Origin: Podarcis melisellensis | Lineage: Eukaryota | Length of the DNA stretch: 64,000 nt | NCBI GenBank assembly: GCA_964234715.1 | Contig: OZ174287.1 | Strand: one strand, 5' to 3' | Shown here: positions 3,428 through 20,867 of the stretch, one piece after another | How the letters are laid out: every line of letters starts with the position of its first letter | How positions within the stretch are numbered: position 1 is the stretch's first letter | Notes under the pieces: model-generated | Seen by the model: only the letters and a program-made list of their open reading frames with translations | Told to the model about the DNA's origin: nothing | Databases searched by the model: none | Program-made: the position numbers and the translations under genes

Positions 3428-4027
3428 AACAGTTGAGTTCAGGTGCTTTCAGATTGACAACCCTTTTTAAAGTCTGGTGAAAGTTTGACGTGCTTCCAAA
3501 TATAATGGTTATTCTGTGGTGCTAGCAACGACTAGGAGGTGAATATGATTATCCTAGCAGCATTTACCATGCCAATGAACATAGCAGATCAGAGAGCCAT
3601 TAACTGCATTTATTATATACCACCCTTAACAGTAATTAGCCCTGGCTCTCCAACCAATAAGCAAATATAGCTGCTTTTGTTTTACTTTATATTGTTCATA
3701 TACACACTTTGTTGCAGTCCTGTGCTGGGACAAATATCTCTGTGTTAGAAATGGGGCAGCCTATGTCATGACTTTGTTTTGTTTTTGTTTGTTCTTTTAA
3801 GCACTGCACTAATTTCAGGCCTGACTGTAGGATGTTTGCCACTGCGTAAGCTGAAATTTGAAGCTTCATCTTCAAAGCAAGGAACTGGCATTTGTCCCAA
3901 GGGGAAAGTCCCTTGCTTCTTTCTTTGTCTTAGATGACTGGTACAAAATGCAAAAGATATCTCTACTCGAAAGGATAATTGTGGATGGCAGCGGTTATCA
4001 CTCATATTCTTTTTCTGGCTATCAAAG

Positions 4028-4120
4028 GTGCAGGTGGTTAATAAGAAGCTGAACTTTAGCCATGTCCAATCCAGGTGTGGATCTAAGGATAATATCAAAC
4101 ATACCCCAGGAGGAGGCAGT
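4028..4120 (+). CDS. MAPT: Tau exon 10 equivalent (repeat R2; the 3R/4R cassette exon)
   Basis: ctttttctggctatcaaag|GTG ... GGCAGT|gtgagt; 93 nt, phase 0-0. Encodes [31 protein letters not shown]. Confidence 0.97.
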
Positions 4121-4136
4121 GTGAGTACTTTCACAC
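4119..4136 (+). promoter_or_regulatory. Exon 10 5' splice-site stem-loop
   Basis: GTGTGA(G)-tact-(T)TCACAC: 6 Watson-Crick pairs plus a G-U pair covering the donor. Confidence 0.8.
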
Positions 4137-11002: not shown

Positions 11003-11084
11003 GTACAAATTGTTTACAAGCCAGTGGATCTCAGCCACATAACGTCTAAATGTGGTTCCTTGGACAACATTCATCATAAACCAG
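11003..11084 (+). CDS. MAPT: Tau exon 11 equivalent (repeat R3, PHF6 VQIVYK)
   Basis: ttgtcctcacag|GTA ... CCAG|gtgatg; 82 nt. Encodes [27 protein letters not shown](G). Confidence 0.97.
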
Positions 11085-11302
11085 GTGATGGTGACTATAT
11101 GTGTTTTTAAAAAAACAATAGTTTCTTACTGGACTTCTAAAGGGGGTGGGACCCAATAGCTTTTTTATTCTGCTTTTTTGCAGACATTGACAAAGGAAAG
11201 GGGAGAGGAGGGAAAGAAGGACAATGATAGGTAGAAGAGGAAGTAATTACAACTGCGGAATGAAATAAAGATAGTCTGCATCCCATGTAATGCTTGCCGC
11301 TA

Positions 11303-11998: not shown

Positions 11999-13035
11999 TA
12001 CTTAATAATTTCATGTGCATGCCTCCAAAAGCCCTCCTACAGCGGCAAACATGTTGGATCAGATCTTTGATCTCTGGAAGCCCTTCCTAGGCATGGTTCA
12101 TGGACTTGAGTCCTCTGCCTGTATACATTCTGCTGTAAATTTGCTTTGGGGGGGAAAACGTTGAAGAAATCTGGATGCCGCAGCAGATGCATACAGGCCT
12201 ATTGGGGGCAACCATCTAACACACACGTTAGTACATACATACATTTGTGCTCTCTGAGCTATTTTGTCCAACCGGCTGGTACAGAAGCCAGTTGGCAGCA
12301 GGCACAGTCTACCTGCAAATGTAATTGATAAGGCCTTTTGTTGCTTCCTTTGTTCCTATAGATGGAGGCCATGAAAGAGAAAGGGAGGGAGGGAGAGAAA
12401 AGGAGACTCTTTTTAAAGAGTGGGTCTCATCAGACTGTTGATGGTATTTATCACCTTGGTATACTAGGTACATATAAGCTTGCTAGCATCTAATTTAAAG
12501 TACACCCTACAGTGGCATGTTCAACTGTTGCCATTTACTTTCTATACAACTGAGTTGCATAGTCAAGTGAGCAAGCCACATACTAGTGACAGGTGGCAAA
12601 CAAAACACCTACCTGACAATATTCCTTCTCTATAGCAGTAGCTTTCACACTGAGCACCCACCAAGTTGATCCAAGATAATTTTTTCTCAAGCTCATCCAA
12701 CCCAACATCCTCTTCTTTTATTTTATTTCTTGCCTGCTAGTGTTTCATTATTTTTTCACTATTTTGCAATTCATTCAGCTGGCATTATTCTGGACCAACT
12801 GCTTCCACTTCTAATGCTGAAAGGGAGCATGGACATGTAGTAAAACTTGGTCAGTTTTATGAGATCAAAGTATATTTGCAAATTGTGTGGAACTTGCCTT
12901 CTGCTGTGTGAAATTGCTGGGTTTTGTTTTTTGCTTTCTAGGCTGTAGAATTTATTATTTACTTGCGCTAAACTCTGAGATAACAAGCCAAATCCATGAC
13001 ATTATTTTCTCCAAATCTTGTACACACACTTTTAA

Positions 13036-13218
<183 letters not shown>

Positions 13219-14208
13219 TGAGGGGAAAATCTCATCAAGTTAATAACAGGTAGCAGCATCTTTCTCAAGCCCTGCTCCCCACCGGTCTCTGATGTTGCTG
13301 CTTTGAACCTTGTTTTTTAAGTCCCCTGTTTTCCCCATGCATTTTCTGTATGCTTCTCTAATGCCTACTAAATACCTATTACATTTGCCAGAGTAACAGC
13401 AAAGGGGTAATTGCTTAGCATCATTCTCCACTTTGTTCCAAAAAAAGGAGCTGCCTCAGAGACTAAACTATGTGTTACATGCAAAATCACTTATTGGAGC
13501 TGTGATGCTGATCTTCCCCTCTCCAAGCTGAGGTGATTGAGAGCAGAAAAATAGTGTGGGAAGGAGAGTTCAACCCTTTTCCCTACACTGAACACGCCCC
13601 TCCCCCCGGAGGTTTAAAGCATGTTTGTACATAACATGTGGTTAGTTCCTTAGCAGCTGCCCACAATGATGGCTGAAGTGGGGTAGGACTTGCCCTTCAG
13701 AAGAATTCTGTCCTTCCATACTCTCCAAGAGGCACCTGGGGGTGCGTACAGACATACCTAAAAACAAAGCCTGTGGGCTCTGAAAGCATTGCCATCATGT
13801 TATTGCCAGACAAACCTGTTGCTGAGTTTGGAGAAAAGAGAGTTGAAGCAAAAACTGACTGACTGCAGGGTCTTGTGCCGAGCCCTGCTGAATCTAGTCC
13901 TGCATTGCATTCCCATAGTGGCCGACCAGGTGCCTGTGGGAAGCTGCAAGCAGGCCCTGAATACAACCATTCTCCCAACTTGTGATTCCTGGCTAAACTA
14001 AATGAGAAAGGGAAGTTGGGTGTTCCCGCTTGTTAATTGGCAGGTTGGTGGGCAGACTTACTGGTGTGGCGGTCAGGCAAGCACAGTGTGGGGGGTGGGG
14101 AGGTGATGCGTGCATGGGGCAGCAGCATGTTACATCAGAGACCTCCTTCCCTTTTCTCACTCCTAGTTCCTTTTGTCATGCTTTGGTGTTTCCAGCTTTT
14201 CCTCAAGT

Positions 14209-14295
14209 GAGCATGCCTGTTGGTAGACTGTTTCTTTAATGAGTGGATTTAATGAGCCTGCCTGTTGGTAGACTGTTTCTTTAATGAGTGCATTT
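14209..14295 (+). repeat. Tandem duplication, 45-bp unit x2
   Basis: gagc(a/c)tgcctgttggtagactgtttctttaatgagtg(g/c)attt occurs twice. Confidence 0.92.
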
Positions 14296-17099
14296 GCTAT
14301 CTGCCAAGATCTTGGAAGGAAATTCCTCTCCAACTAGGGATATAAGTTAGGTTGGCCTTGCCTTTGGAGATACAGGAGAAGTTAGTCTTTCTAGCCAGCG
14401 ATCCTACTGATTAAACAGAGGGAGCTTCAACGGTAAGTTCAGTTTCCCCTTTAATCACACAGCTATATATCATTGGTGCTTTGCATAATTTTTTTTAAAA
14501 AGCAGAAAGTCTAAAGCATGGGGAAGGGGCAGCAAGGAATGCGGTGTTTACAATGGAGGTAAGTATGCCTGTTGATTTGCAGCATAAAGGAGGGGGAAAC
14601 CAGGCTCACATCACTGGAGAAATTAACATGTCGGCTGCCATTTTTAGGTACGTCTGTATGCGCCCAGAGGGAGGCAAAGGTTTCAAATGGAGCAAGGAGG
14701 AGGAGGGGTCTTTGATTGCTTGGCTATGTTTGCTACTACAGTCAAGACTGATGTCTGATGCTGTGGTCTAGATACCATTTTCATAAGGTATACTTGATGC
14801 CTTTTAAAATTTCACAAAGCCCCTGCTTTACTCTAAGAAGGCCCTTATCAACTTTTTTTTTGCTTAAAAAGAAAGGACCCATTGACCATTACCTGCTCAC
14901 ATATTGCTGGTATCCAGGTTGCTGAGATATTTAATGTGGCAGAGCAGCCTATTCTGTTGGTCCCTCCATAGGATGCAAATACTGCCAACTGGAGTGGTTC
15001 TCCCAGAAAGACTGATAAAATGATGAATCGGCACAGTAATTCTGTTAAGGCGGACCTTCCCCATTGAGGTCATATAATATACTTAGAAGTTAATTGCACA
15101 ATTAGCTTTTTTCCTTGGACCAGGCGTGCCAGCTTACTATGCATCTGGGAATATCAATTCCCTAAATCATTCCACTTCAGAATAGGATTGCCAGCTTTTC
15201 AGCTGGCCCCTATATGTGTGCCTTTAATAGCGGCTTAATGTACAAACATTAACAGGTGGTGATATTCATTTCCATGCTATGAAAAGGTTTGCCCTCTGCT
15301 TTCTGTGTATCAAGCTGCTGTTAAAAGCAAAAGAGCAGTCCAGACTGGGTTAGTTTTCCTCATAAATTGGCAACCCAGTTCAGGCAGCTTATGCACAAAG
15401 AGCCCTGGAGCTATCAGCAGGGATGCATCATAGGTTTTGAAACCCCATTTGGAGAGTGATTCAGTATACCAGTTAATCCTGTTTGTTTGTTTGTATTTGC
15501 CTCATCTGTTGTGCCTGTCTTGGGGAGGGAGGCTCTACTCACATGCATTTCAGCCCCTTCCTCTCAGACGCATCTCATTTTAGTAGCCTTAGAAATCTTT
15601 CTAGCTCTCATTGGCTCCTTCCAGTGAATGTGCTGGCTTCTGATGGAGGAACTTCTCCGCTTCCTTATCCTTCTCTCAGTGTTTCACACATCGGAGCATC
15701 CACCTCTTTTCACTCCACCTCTCTCCCTCTCCCCTCTTTTTCTGCATTTCCTGGACCACAGTTGGGCTTTTGTAGCGTATCAGAGAAGGAAACCTTGCAG
15801 GCACTGTGAGCATAAGTATGACTTTTGACCCACTTGGATGGCCCTATGCTCCAGGCACAGGAAGAGGAGTCCATGAATGGCAAGCAGTGTGATGAACATA
15901 GTTAAAGGGGGCAGAGAATTCATGAGAGTGAGAAGGTTTAATGTCAGGAATAGCACTGTTCTCTCCCCCACTGATTCCCCTCCCCAAGAGACAAGTTTAA
16001 ACTTTGGAATAGTTCCATTATTATATTAGCTATCTGCTCAGGCTTGGTGACCATTCTGTAGTTGTGCCCTGAGACAGCCAGGGCATCTAGAAGGAATCCT
16101 TTCCTGTGATAACGAATTATGCTAATGAAGTGTGAGCATCTGTTTTTCTTGGGAACAGTAAAGAATATGGGAAACACTACAGAGGTCCTCTGCTTTAGTA
16201 GCACCCCTGCACCAGCCATCACCAAGCTATATACAGTAACTTCATCTCACAATAAGTTGTTGCTTTAAGCAAAAAACCCTGCTGTCGCCACCTGATAAGG
16301 GGAGGGGGATGTAGACTCTAGATACCCACGCCTCTAAAGACTTCTTCTACAACTGTGGAATGGGGGTCCGCAACCCCAGCTACCCCCGATCATTTGCTGG
16401 TATTCCTGGGATTGCTTAGGGGTCTGGGAAGACTCCTGGCTATCTCTAATGTAGTGGCCCAAAGGCTGTAAACGGAGCTCTTTTTCCTCCGCAGAGCCCT
16501 TAGCACTTAAGCAGGGAGTTGAGTAGGAGGGCCCAGGTGCAGGCTCCAGCCCACCCTCTCAGCACTTCTGGCTAATGAGAGAGGAGATCCAGAGGATAAA
16601 GGTTGTATCAAAGTTAAGGCCTTCTGAGAAGATCAATTTTTTATTTAAGAAGGCACCTATGGTGACAACAGTAGCATACAAAGGCAAGAATTAACCCTGC
16701 TTTTTTGTGAAGGTAGAGTTAAGATTGGAAGCTGGACAAAGCTTTCTTCCCCACTAGAATTATTTTTTGGTAAAAATCATTTGACCCTGCTTTCCAGAAG
16801 AGGAGTTAACCCATGCCTGTATGTTCCACTCCTCTGCTGACTGACAATGGCAAAATTCATCAGCCATCTGCTGAGTGGTATGAGACATATTGGAGTGCAC
16901 ACCATCTTTATTCGCTAGCTCTTGCATTCTCCATCTCTGGTTCCTGTACCTTCTTCTGCACACTGCAGTTATATTCCTGATGCTCTGTCCTCCTCCAATT
17001 CTATATGTCCCTCCCTCCCCATTGAAGATTTTTGGTTTCATGTCATCTTATTTGACGATGCTATTTTGCATCCCACTGACCTTCTCCACCCACATGCAG

Positions 17100-17229
17100 A
17101 GAGAGAAGGGCAAGGAAGACACGAACGGTGCTCAAAACTGCCCCAATAAGACTGGGCCTCCTTCCCCCATCACGGAGCCCTCCATCCCTGAGGAGAGCCC
17201 ACTCCCCGACTTGCACCCATGTGATGCCA
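17100..17229 (+). CDS. MAPT: Candidate alternative tau exon in intron 12 (alternative C-terminus)
   Basis: Branch-like CACTGAC, pyrimidine tract, cag| at 17099/17100, donor CA|gtaagt at 17229/17230. Open in phase 0 after exon 12: REKGKEDTNGAQNCPNKTGPPSPITEPSIPEESPLPDLHPCDA. No transcript evidence available. Confidence 0.55.
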
Positions 17230-17940
17230 GTAAGTAGTTACCTGTTCTCATGAGCTTTGTGAGAGCTAGATGGGAATCAGATACCCAGAGCTTGGAGGGT
17301 GTGGGGTGGTAAGGCATCATACTAGTTTTCTCTGATTTTGTTAGATTGAAAACCTGGTGTTCTGTACTAACCCTAGCAGCTTAATGTGAAAAAACCCCTG
17401 TACTTTAAAAATATTTTGGACTATCAGACCTCTATCACCATTCCACCTATCTGCAAGATTGGCTGCTGGGATCTTTCATCTGGCATGGTTTCAAGATAAG
17501 GGATGCCCAGTTTGATAGGAGACTCGACTTCTTTGCCTGAAAACATTCATTAATTTATTTGGATAGGTCACCTTTTCATAACATGGTAGTACAATTCTGG
17601 GAGAAGCTGCTTTTGAAAGAAGTTGACATTTTTGTATGTTCCATTTCATAGGCTCATAGCACACAGTTTGCATACAACTTCTGTCTATAGGTTGTATGAA
17701 GCAATGTAGGATTCCTAGATCAAGGAAACATGGATATCATTATTTTTTTAATTAAAAAAATGTCAGCCAAGCAAATGAGTGGAACTGCCCTTATAACAAC
17801 ACACTAAAAACTGAGAGCCTGGATTTTCCCAATTCTGAGCATACATCAGTGTTTTGCCAAAGCAGCGGCGATGGGGAGAAGAGGAGCTGCGGCTGAACGA
17901 ACCACTTTGGCATACCAGTCAAACTCTAGTGAAGGTATAG

Positions 17941-18234
<294 letters not shown>

Positions 18235-20867
18235 TTGTGTTAAAGTGGGTGGAGAGAATAAGAAGAGAAGAATCCACTCTGGCCTTTCTTTCTCTGTTCC
18301 GTTTTACATCTTCATTCCCCACCATTCCTTAATTTATTTCGTTTTTTATATTAATGGGCTAACTCTTTTAACCTGGTTCCCTGTCCCCCTTGCCATTTAT
18401 TCATCTGTGGTCTCAGGATTTCAAAATTAGTAACAGTATGAAAACAAAGATTTCTTACTATATCTCAGTCTAGAGAAAGACATCATTTCACCACTTGCTC
18501 CTAAACAAAAGGAAATGTAATTGTTAGGAAAATTTGTGCTGCATAAGATATAAGCTTAAGAAAGAGGGTTGGTATCTGCCTCTGTCGATGAGTAGCAGCT
18601 AACCAAGTTTGTCCCCATGAACAGAGAAAAGAGCCTATATTGCTGTGGGATTGTTTAGTAACCTTCTTCAAGAACACCTGCTGTTTTGCATTTTGTTACA
18701 GGTATGTGTGATAGTGTAAGTCTAAAGCAGATATCAACTGCATACACAGGATTTGCAGTGTGAAATATCCCCTACTTCAGTCCTCAGGGAATTAGTCTTC
18801 AGAATCTCATCTCTGCGGGGGGACATGTTTCTATGCTGGGAAGGGGGCAAATGCCTTTTATTTTAAGTTTTCTTGAATGGGGTTTGACTAGAGCCATACC
18901 ACTGCATGCGAGGGCCAATGCATTGGCCTGATACCTTTGAATCACAAGAGCAAACAGCATTGAAATCCTGCCAGCTCCCTCAACTATGGTTCAAATGGTG
19001 CATACTGAGGAGCAAGGTGACGCTTGCCTCATGCGATTCTCCTTTGGGGATAGTTTTTGCAAATGTAGGGACATTAAAAGCAAATTTTCATACTATTTGA
19101 CTATTACTACCACTTTTCTCCCCTCTTCCACTTGCCTGCCTTCTTTCTCATCTTTCCAGCCTAAAAAAATGCCACAAGTTCCATGCCCGTCTCTTTGCTC
19201 TTGCCATAACATTTGCAGGTTGGTTCAAAGGACTTGGTAGGTGTTCTTGGGGGAGGGGAGCAAGGAGGTTTGTGGGTTTCAGATTTGCTCCTTGTGTTCA
19301 GTCCGATAAGCATGGCTGTTTCTCTTGGTTTTCATGACAAAATTGTGGTTGTACGTAGAAATTTGTGAGGTAGAGGTGTGGTTCTAGGGTTTTTTGTTAA
19401 ATGAGATAGGTGCACTTAAGTGCAAGTGCATGGGGGAAGAAGGGTAACTTCCTGGAAGGGCGTGCATGTGGGAATAGGTGCACCTTTTAGAATCAAGAGT
19501 CTTTCATAATAGTTGCATATATCTGATGCTCTCTTCATTGCATGCATGTTTATTCCTCAGTACGTGCATCTGTGGAAGAAGCATCACAAATCATAGACAC
19601 CAAAAGGTTTCGTTATCACCTCCAATACTTTTCCATGAAGATTGTTCACCCTTTCAGTTATGAGTACTCAAGCATTGCTCATGTAGTATGAACAAGTCCC
19701 CAAACTTGGGTGTGCATGCTCCAAGGGAAACCTACAGCACAATGCAACCAGCAGGAATCTATTTCCCATATTTTCTGAAAAGGTGCCAGAGAATTCAAGT
19801 TTTCACAGGTGGGGGGGGGGGAGAGTCCAAAACTAGCACACTGTGCAGAAGTGTCTGAATAATGACTGTTTCTGAACATAACCTGCATATGTGTACTGGC
19901 TCAAGAAGCTATCACACTAGCAGAAAGAGCTCTTTCCCTCACCTGTCAAAGTTGGAAGACTAATTGCATTTGTAGTACAGATTCCAGGGTCGTCCTTACA
20001 AACCCTTCCCCCCTTTGCTGTTTAAAAAACATTTACGATACGAGTTGTAGCTGTGCATCTACCTAGGCTAAGTGAAAATACTTTATTTTCAGAGAGTACT
20101 TTGCCTTTTGTGAATGGCTATTCCTCCCTGCCACTGCCTTTATCATCTTATAGAATCTTTCTCTCTCCCCTGCCCTCTCAAATTTCCATCCTTCAGATGT
20201 AAGTTCCCAAGCAACACAGGCTTTGCAAAACATAGCCTAGTTTATTGGAGTACTACCTGAAACACGGAAGAGCAACAGAGCTCCTATTAGAATTATGACA
20301 CAATCTATTGCATGAACGGTTGTAAATAATACAGATTTTATAAGGCAGTCCCACCACCACTTATACATTACACAGTTGGAATTGTCTGGATGTGTTTGGA
20401 AATTTCCAAGTGAGAGGATAAGATGGTTTAAGTAAAACATAACACACAAACCCAAGAAGCGGGGGGGTGGGGGGGTGGGTCTCAAATTGGTGATAGCATA
20501 CATGGCTTTTTAACAGTAAGTTCACAAATATGGCAACAGAGGCCTGACCCTCAGAGCTAGGTCCAATAAGGAACTGTGGTGTAGGTTTACAGCATAGTAT
20601 TTAAAGCTTGGCAAGGCGTATATTATCTGAGTTTGCCAAACTGATGGTGGTTGTTGGTGACTGGGTGGCAGCCTCTAAGTGAACCAGGTGTCTTGACATG
20701 GGTGTAGAAGATTCTGCAACAGATAAGGATCATAGCATGCAGAATTAGAATCACAGAACTGTAGAGTTGGGAGGACAGTGCTCATAGTGATTAAGAATTT
20801 CCTCTTCCTGTTCTCTCCATTTCCTCAAATAGTCTTGCTACCCAACTCGTGCATCTGTCTTTGTACT

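Follow-up and report, generated by a model that had tools for sequence, protein, structure and literature searches.

A probable cassette exon in intron 12 of lizard MAPT whose inclusion would exchange the C-terminus of tau

The C-terminal domain of tau takes part in microtubule binding and in the "paperclip" fold-back of the protein, carries major phosphorylation sites and includes the end of the filament core. Among non-mammalian tau-like proteins, the Xenopus isoforms XTP-1 and XTP-2 of Olesen and colleagues are said to differ at their C-terminus. A text that cites Olesen et al. (2002, Gene 283:299) covers XTP tissue distribution and size and makes no mention of the exon described below. Retention of intron 12 of human MAPT, which brings in an intronic stop and a poly-A signal, gives rise to W-Tau (TIR-MAPT), an isoform that has an 18-residue, tryptophan-containing, basic tail, is reported both to retain microtubule binding and to aggregate less, and is described as human-specific (PMC9735940, PMC8909800). 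Alternative use of the proximal and distal 3' splice sites of tau exon 6 (isoforms 6p and 6d) shifts the reading frame, so that tau is C-terminally truncated and ends in a short new sequence (PMC8909800). Here we analyze an additional MAPT exon, located at 17100-17229 (plus strand) of a 64,000-nucleotide stretch of the genome of the lizard Podarcis melisellensis (assembly GCA_964234715.1, contig OZ174287.1; hereafter, the window), which carries the 3' half of the gene.

The evidence presented below makes it highly probable that 17100-17229 is a genuine, regulated cassette exon of 130 nt (3n+1) whose inclusion swaps the C-terminus of tau. The exon has canonical splice sites, RNA reads span its downstream junction, the skipped form is observed as well, and its splice sites, reading frame and length class are conserved. 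The isoform is already known at the annotation level, and hence the exon is not a discovery; what the analysis offers is a pointer to a deeply conserved isoform that has apparently gone unstudied, and to an unusual constraint at the RNA level.

Splice signals and reading frame of the alternative exon

Intron 12 (13186-18018) separates MAPT exon 12 (13073-13185, plus strand), which encodes the fourth repeat, is covered by RNA reads and ends in phase 0 with ...PGGGNKK, from the coding part of exon 13 (18019-18234, plus strand). The initial annotation of this sequence had proposed an extra exon between the two, and each of the signals that it named was located at the positions it had given. A branch-point-like CACTGAC (17074-17080) is followed by a pyrimidine-rich tract and a cag/A acceptor, the exon start at 17100 reads cag/AGAGAGAAGG with the purine-rich opening AGAGAGAAGGGCAAGGAAGAC, and the donor is CA/GTAAGT, with 17229 as the final base of the exon. 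The segment 17100-17228 translates without a stop over 43 codons in the phase of exon 12 (REKGKED...HPCDA), and the exon as a whole codes for REKGKEDTNGAQNCPNKTGPPSPITEPSIPEESPLPDLHPCDA plus the first base of an Asn codon. That base, 17229, forms AAT (Asn) with 18019-18020, and the frameshifted exon 13 continues directly into a TGA at 18021-18023, contained in the ATTGAG at the start of exon 13 and completed five bases into it, in agreement with the shift to AAT TGA that had been predicted. The peptide stretch PEESPLPDLHPCDAN belongs to the tail of this product. Reading through the donor ends in Ala-Ser-Lys-stop, also as anticipated, and two public open reading frames (ORFs) from unspliced RNA have the same ending.

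Through its 3n+1 length, inclusion of the exon would shift the frame and terminate translation at the TGA in ATTGAG, giving a predicted tau that contains all of the repeats and in which a 44-residue acidic, proline-rich tail replaces the 71-residue C-terminal domain. The replaced domain holds the pseudo-repeat that follows R4 and the lizard counterparts of S396 and S404; it follows from the sequence that these equivalents, together with the end of the filament core, would be lost, as had been proposed. Since translation would stop within the last coding exon, a point on which the initial annotation also holds, the mRNA is expected to be translated and not degraded. Judged on the coding exons, the position of the stop at 18021-18023 likewise led us to reject a role as a poison exon acting through nonsense-mediated decay (NMD), for which a later exon-exon junction would be needed more than ~50 nt beyond the stop.

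When all potential sites of intron 12 were ranked with a crude splice-site score, the donor came sixth of 244 and the acceptor eighth of 361, and a single acceptor/donor pair in the intron was both this good and open in the phase of exon 12. Across both strands of the 64-kb window, 54 pairs reached an equal score, nine of them open. The sequence alone is hence suggestive and not decisive, and the decision falls to RNA and comparative evidence.

Conservation in squamates and other vertebrates

The 43-residue peptide was scanned against 1.84 billion representative proteins. Only two matches were obtained: a 102-residue ORF from unspliced RNA and a 672-residue tau protein, XP_034990818.1 (Zootoca vivipara tau isoform X3), which is 100% identical and carries the peptide at its C-terminus (residues 629-671). 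The cluster of the latter also contains Zootoca isoform X7 (XP_060137497.1) and the Podarcis lilfordi protein CAI5790376.1, with the same end. A further search, in which the tail of the Zootoca protein served as query, returned tau isoforms with the same tail from lizards (Lacerta agilis X3, Anolis sagrei X14/X16/X27, Tiliqua scincoides, Varanus komodoensis, Eublepharis macularius, Pogona vitticeps, Salvator merianae, Heteronotia binoei and Sphaerodactylus townsendi) and from snakes (Notechis scutatus, Thamnophis elegans X3 and Thamnophis sirtalis), and cluster look-ups yielded it in addition for Pantherophis, Erythrolamprus, Ahaetulla, Pseudonaja, Crotalus and Naja. In total, tau models of ~20 squamate species in RefSeq, Ensembl or GenBank finish with this tail, which is constant at 43 residues plus Asn, with zero indels and 82-100% identity; canonical isoforms are modelled in the same species too. 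The predicted isoform, with all repeats followed by the acidic, proline-rich tail, is borne out by the models of Lacerta agilis and Podarcis lilfordi, which match the window residue for residue through ...PGGGNKK-REKGKED...HPCDAN and the stop, Zootoca having NKR in place of NKK. Relative to Zootoca, identity is 82-100% in the tail, 89-98% in the repeat region and 75-93% in the N-terminal half; tail conservation is thus similar to that of the repeats, and it exceeds that of the N-terminal half in all comparisons except the snake, for which the values are 82% (tail) and 79%. Some other public tau models, Tiliqua isoform X13 (P0135) and Varanus isoforms X13 and X11 (P0142, P0143), end directly after the PGGG of a repeat with ...GGG(S/K)FLWT, and point to another type of truncation, generated by reading into the intron that follows a repeat exon.

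At the DNA level, the window was compared with two unspliced squamate RNA contigs (L009, L010) and with the genome of the elapid snake Notechis scutatus (L014). Identity to the window in these three squamates is 88-100% across an island of ~300 nt (~16975-17275) and near random outside of it. The island takes in the upstream intronic flank (16975-17099, plus strand), with CACTGAC, the pyrimidine tract and the cag acceptor, and the donor GTAAGT with the downstream intronic flank (17230-17275, plus strand). The upstream flank is itself 88-100% identical in the three squamates, the elapid included, and the 100 nt of intron in front of the exon match it in conservation. Substitution rates between the window and Notechis were estimated with the Nei-Gojobori method. 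For exons 12 and 13 combined, the synonymous rate (dS) was 0.393 (23.5 differences over 76.8 synonymous sites) and the non-synonymous rate (dN) 0.010; for the alternative exon, dS was 0.036 (1 difference over 28.7 sites) and dN 0.062. The synonymous rate of the alternative exon is therefore about ten times below that of exons 12 and 13, which is indicative of an RNA-level constraint, for example through the control of splicing, and its dN lies far below the neutral proxy provided by the dS of 0.393. Stable RNA structure was considered as an explanation and rejected, since the island folds no better than its shuffles (z = -0.26). No RBFOX motif (GCATG) was found in the flanks; six YCAY motifs lie upstream of the exon, which is suggestive only. 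Inclusion would probably be controlled by the conserved flanking intron together with the RNA sequence of the exon, and from the conservation of the flanks we infer that this control may be tissue-specific.

The Notechis exon (L014:58734-58863) ends in TGTGAT/GTCA/gtaagt. The change of the last Ala codon to Val (GCC to GTC) creates, in elapids, a second GT donor 4 nt upstream of the first, and the two donors define either a 126-nt in-frame exon (a 42-residue insert) or the 130-nt frameshifting exon. Both forms are represented among elapid models (P0029, P0118, P0119, P0112), one with the tail ...HPCDVN followed by a stop and the other continuing in frame as ...HPCD-IESHKL... with the normal C-terminus. 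The in-frame insert suggests that the tail peptide itself is tolerated or used. The window keeps GCC and is without the second elapid donor.

Transcripts beyond the squamates were searched with exon 12 and the tail part of the Podarcis protein as query, a search limited to short fragments, and taxon labels for the contigs (L001-L013) were assigned by the appearance of their tau sequences. RNA-run ORFs were recovered in which ...GGG.K(K/R) continues into REKG..., and spliced cDNA contigs from distant vertebrate lineages run from exon 11 through exon 12, the new exon and exon 13 into the 3' untranslated region. The exon measures 148 nt in a GC-rich, bird- or archosaur-like contig (L001, ending ...EGTN), 151 nt in amphibian-like contigs (L002-L004, with 39 contigs on record; ...LERD), 124 nt in a further group (L005-L007; ...QEND) and 139 nt in a fish-like contig (L008; ...EDSY). 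The measured length is 3n+1 in all four lineages, and all four use the TGA of the ATTGA at the start of exon 13. In a second bird- or archosaur-like species, represented by three runs (L011-L013), exon 13 begins with ATC and a TAA stop follows four codons later, the tail ending in ...EGTNRDS. The peptides share REKG(K/N)E(D/E) as well as one proline, and are acidic and rich in proline. The conservation in reptiles and birds for which the initial annotation had called is present in squamates and in bird- or archosaur-like contigs, and it is not confined to them, extending to fish-like and amphibian-like transcripts. Judged by these sequences, the exon is ancient in vertebrates. None of the 35 mammal-type exon 12 fragments returned continues into REK..., all of them running into exon 13 or into intron, which hints weakly that mammals may be without the exon.

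RNA reads from the locus and alternative explanations

RNA reads were placed on 13000-18300, with 19-45 reads per run. The runs include bulk RNA (X23, 30 reads) and single-cell RNA (X21, 45 reads) from different studies, as well as RNA-like data from another organism (X2). The junction from 17229 to 18019 (GT..AG) is spanned, in MAPT orientation, by five X23 reads with four start positions and by two X21 reads. Depth is maximal on the exon bin in both X23 (3.3) and X21, with zero in the adjacent intron bins, and use of the acceptor at 17100 is evident from three X21 reads whose loose end falls exactly at 17099/17100. The skipped form, given by the canonical junction from 13185 to 18019, is seen in one read of X24 and at a contig depth of 59 in X2. 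Of the two junctions that the initial annotation had expected, that from 17229 to 18019 is thus observed in two runs, whereas none of the few reads from this species, at very low coverage, joins 13185 to 17100; a counterpart of the latter junction occurs both in close relatives, as public gene models, and in other vertebrates, as spliced contigs.

Apart from this missing junction, several observations weigh against a regulated tau cassette exon. X23 has a depth of ~3-5 on the exon and on exon 13, and of 0 on exon 12. The acceptor in X21 continues into 29 nt that do not belong to exon 12 and have no match in the window at up to three mismatches. The exon in X2 is found at intron depth (11.9), within one unspliced contig, as opposed to a depth of 59 for the canonical junction of exons 12 and 13, which indicates low inclusion in these data. 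The models of the ~20 species are not fully independent, because automated annotation such as that of RefSeq can carry evidence over between species. Beyond the squamates, what the peptides share is limited to REKG(K/N)E(D/E), one proline and a composition rich in P and E. Finally, the dN/dS ratio within the exon, a check that the initial annotation had suggested, comes to 0.4-1.7, which is not in itself a sign of protein-level selection and is uninformative because dS is depressed, yet dN remains below the dS of exons 12 and 13. The oddities of X23 and X21 cannot be weighed with only 19-45 reads per run.

Three other explanations may account for part of these data. In some tissues, the exon could belong to transcripts with a start inside intron 12 itself or at an upstream exon derived from a repeat, giving rise to RNAs without the repeat domain. 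This is quite improbable. It would fit the X23 reads, which lie on the alternative exon and exon 13 and never on exon 12, with about one read unspliced across the acceptor (bin 16894-17070), and the join of 17100 to a foreign 29-mer in X21, of which the repeat copy at 51987-52015 matches 24 of 29 bases. These counts are, however, tiny (30 and 45 reads), and partly spliced pre-mRNA, from which the short intron of 789 nt between the alternative exon and exon 13 had been removed first, would look alike; moreover, the contigs of other vertebrates run through exons 11, 12, the alternative exon and 13, and the conserved 3n+1 length makes sense only in the frame of tau. A chance pseudo-exon, with good-looking sites and an open frame but no biological use, would be compatible with the number of pairs of equal crude quality in the window, and is already refuted, to the point of negligible probability, by the junction reads, the models from ~20 species, the distant spliced contigs and the sharp island of conservation.

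It is also conceivable, if unlikely, that the exon is real and has no other task than shutting off the normal C-terminus or adjusting tau output at the RNA level, the tail being a functionless spacer before the stop. What is invariant across lineages is indeed the 3n+1 length and the early stop in exon 13 (ATTGA in four of five lineages), and not the peptide; in squamates, synonymous sites are frozen like non-synonymous ones and 100 nt of flank are equally conserved, a combination that has the signature of splicing regulation. Against a mere spacer, the tail is free of indels and conserved about as well as the repeats in ~20 squamates, REKGKED is retained out to the fish-like sequence, and the elapid in-frame version keeps the peptide together with the normal C-terminus; as for RNA tuning, NMD is not expected with a stop in the last coding exon. 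We retain a regulated cassette exon that exchanges the C-terminus of tau as the preferred reading.

The remaining MAPT exons in the window are exon 9 (~59-358), exon 10 (~4025-4123) and exon 11 (~11003-11092). The best match in the window to the 29-mer of X21 is the repeat copy cited above, on the minus strand near KANSL1, and the 29-mer may possibly represent a repeat-derived upstream exon outside the window. Intron 12 is covered nearly throughout in X2, at a depth of 4-12 as compared to 35-105 on exons; unspliced MAPT pre-mRNA is hence abundant in these data, and abundant pre-mRNA explains why many runs contain the exon in unspliced form. RNA reads gather, in all four runs, on a stretch of ~35 nt in intron 12 (13910-13944); they carry a G>C difference at 13924 and have unrelated loose ends to either side, a behaviour resembling that of a piece of an expressed repeat or of a gene located elsewhere.

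Comparison with described tau isoforms

Searches of the literature, among them one for the peptide string, brought up no account of the exon, although older papers on Xenopus or chicken tau may describe the exon. The portions consulted of a survey of MAPT exon evolution (PMC4815063) and of the surveys of Big tau (PMC9755724) make no mention of it. Features that appear to be unreported are the 3n+1 design shared across vertebrates, the low synonymous rate of the exon, the tandem donor of snakes and the parallel with W-Tau. We tentatively propose, as a possibility that falls somewhat short of even, that this exon already belonged to the ancestral MAPT gene of bony vertebrates and has persisted for hundreds of millions of years as a regulated switch that removes the C-terminal domain, that it is apparently missing from mammals and that it has gone undescribed. 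Were this true, W-Tau, supposedly specific to humans, would have a natural counterpart in non-mammalian vertebrates, and the near absence of change at synonymous sites and in the intron flanks would point to an element dedicated to splicing control. A natural and conserved isoform that swaps the C-terminal domain would provide a ready-made comparative system for the role of the tau C-terminus, including the question of whether its removal protects against aggregation.

Among the known systems, the public squamate models agree with the window in the exon, its junctions and the 44-residue C-terminus, with no substantive difference; they are automated, and no publication that characterises them was found. 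Xenopus XTP-1 and XTP-2 are comparable as isoforms of non-mammalian tau, and an amphibian-like spliced contig (L002) carries the exon. The 6p and 6d isoforms resemble the lizard product in that alternative splicing shifts the frame and results in a C-terminally truncated tau with a novel tail, but they remove the repeats altogether, whereas the lizard exon keeps all of them. The likeness to W-Tau extends to the site of the cut, which in both cases falls at the same point, after the ...GGGNKK of exon 12, with loss of the domain encoded by exon 13 and gain of a short unique tail; by analogy with the human isoform, the lizard product may still bind microtubules while folding back or aggregating differently. 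The two differ in that W-Tau results from a retained intron, whereas the lizard exon is spliced at both ends and has its stop in exon 13, and in that the lizard tail, of 44 residues, is acidic and proline-rich and is encoded by an exon conserved across vertebrate classes.

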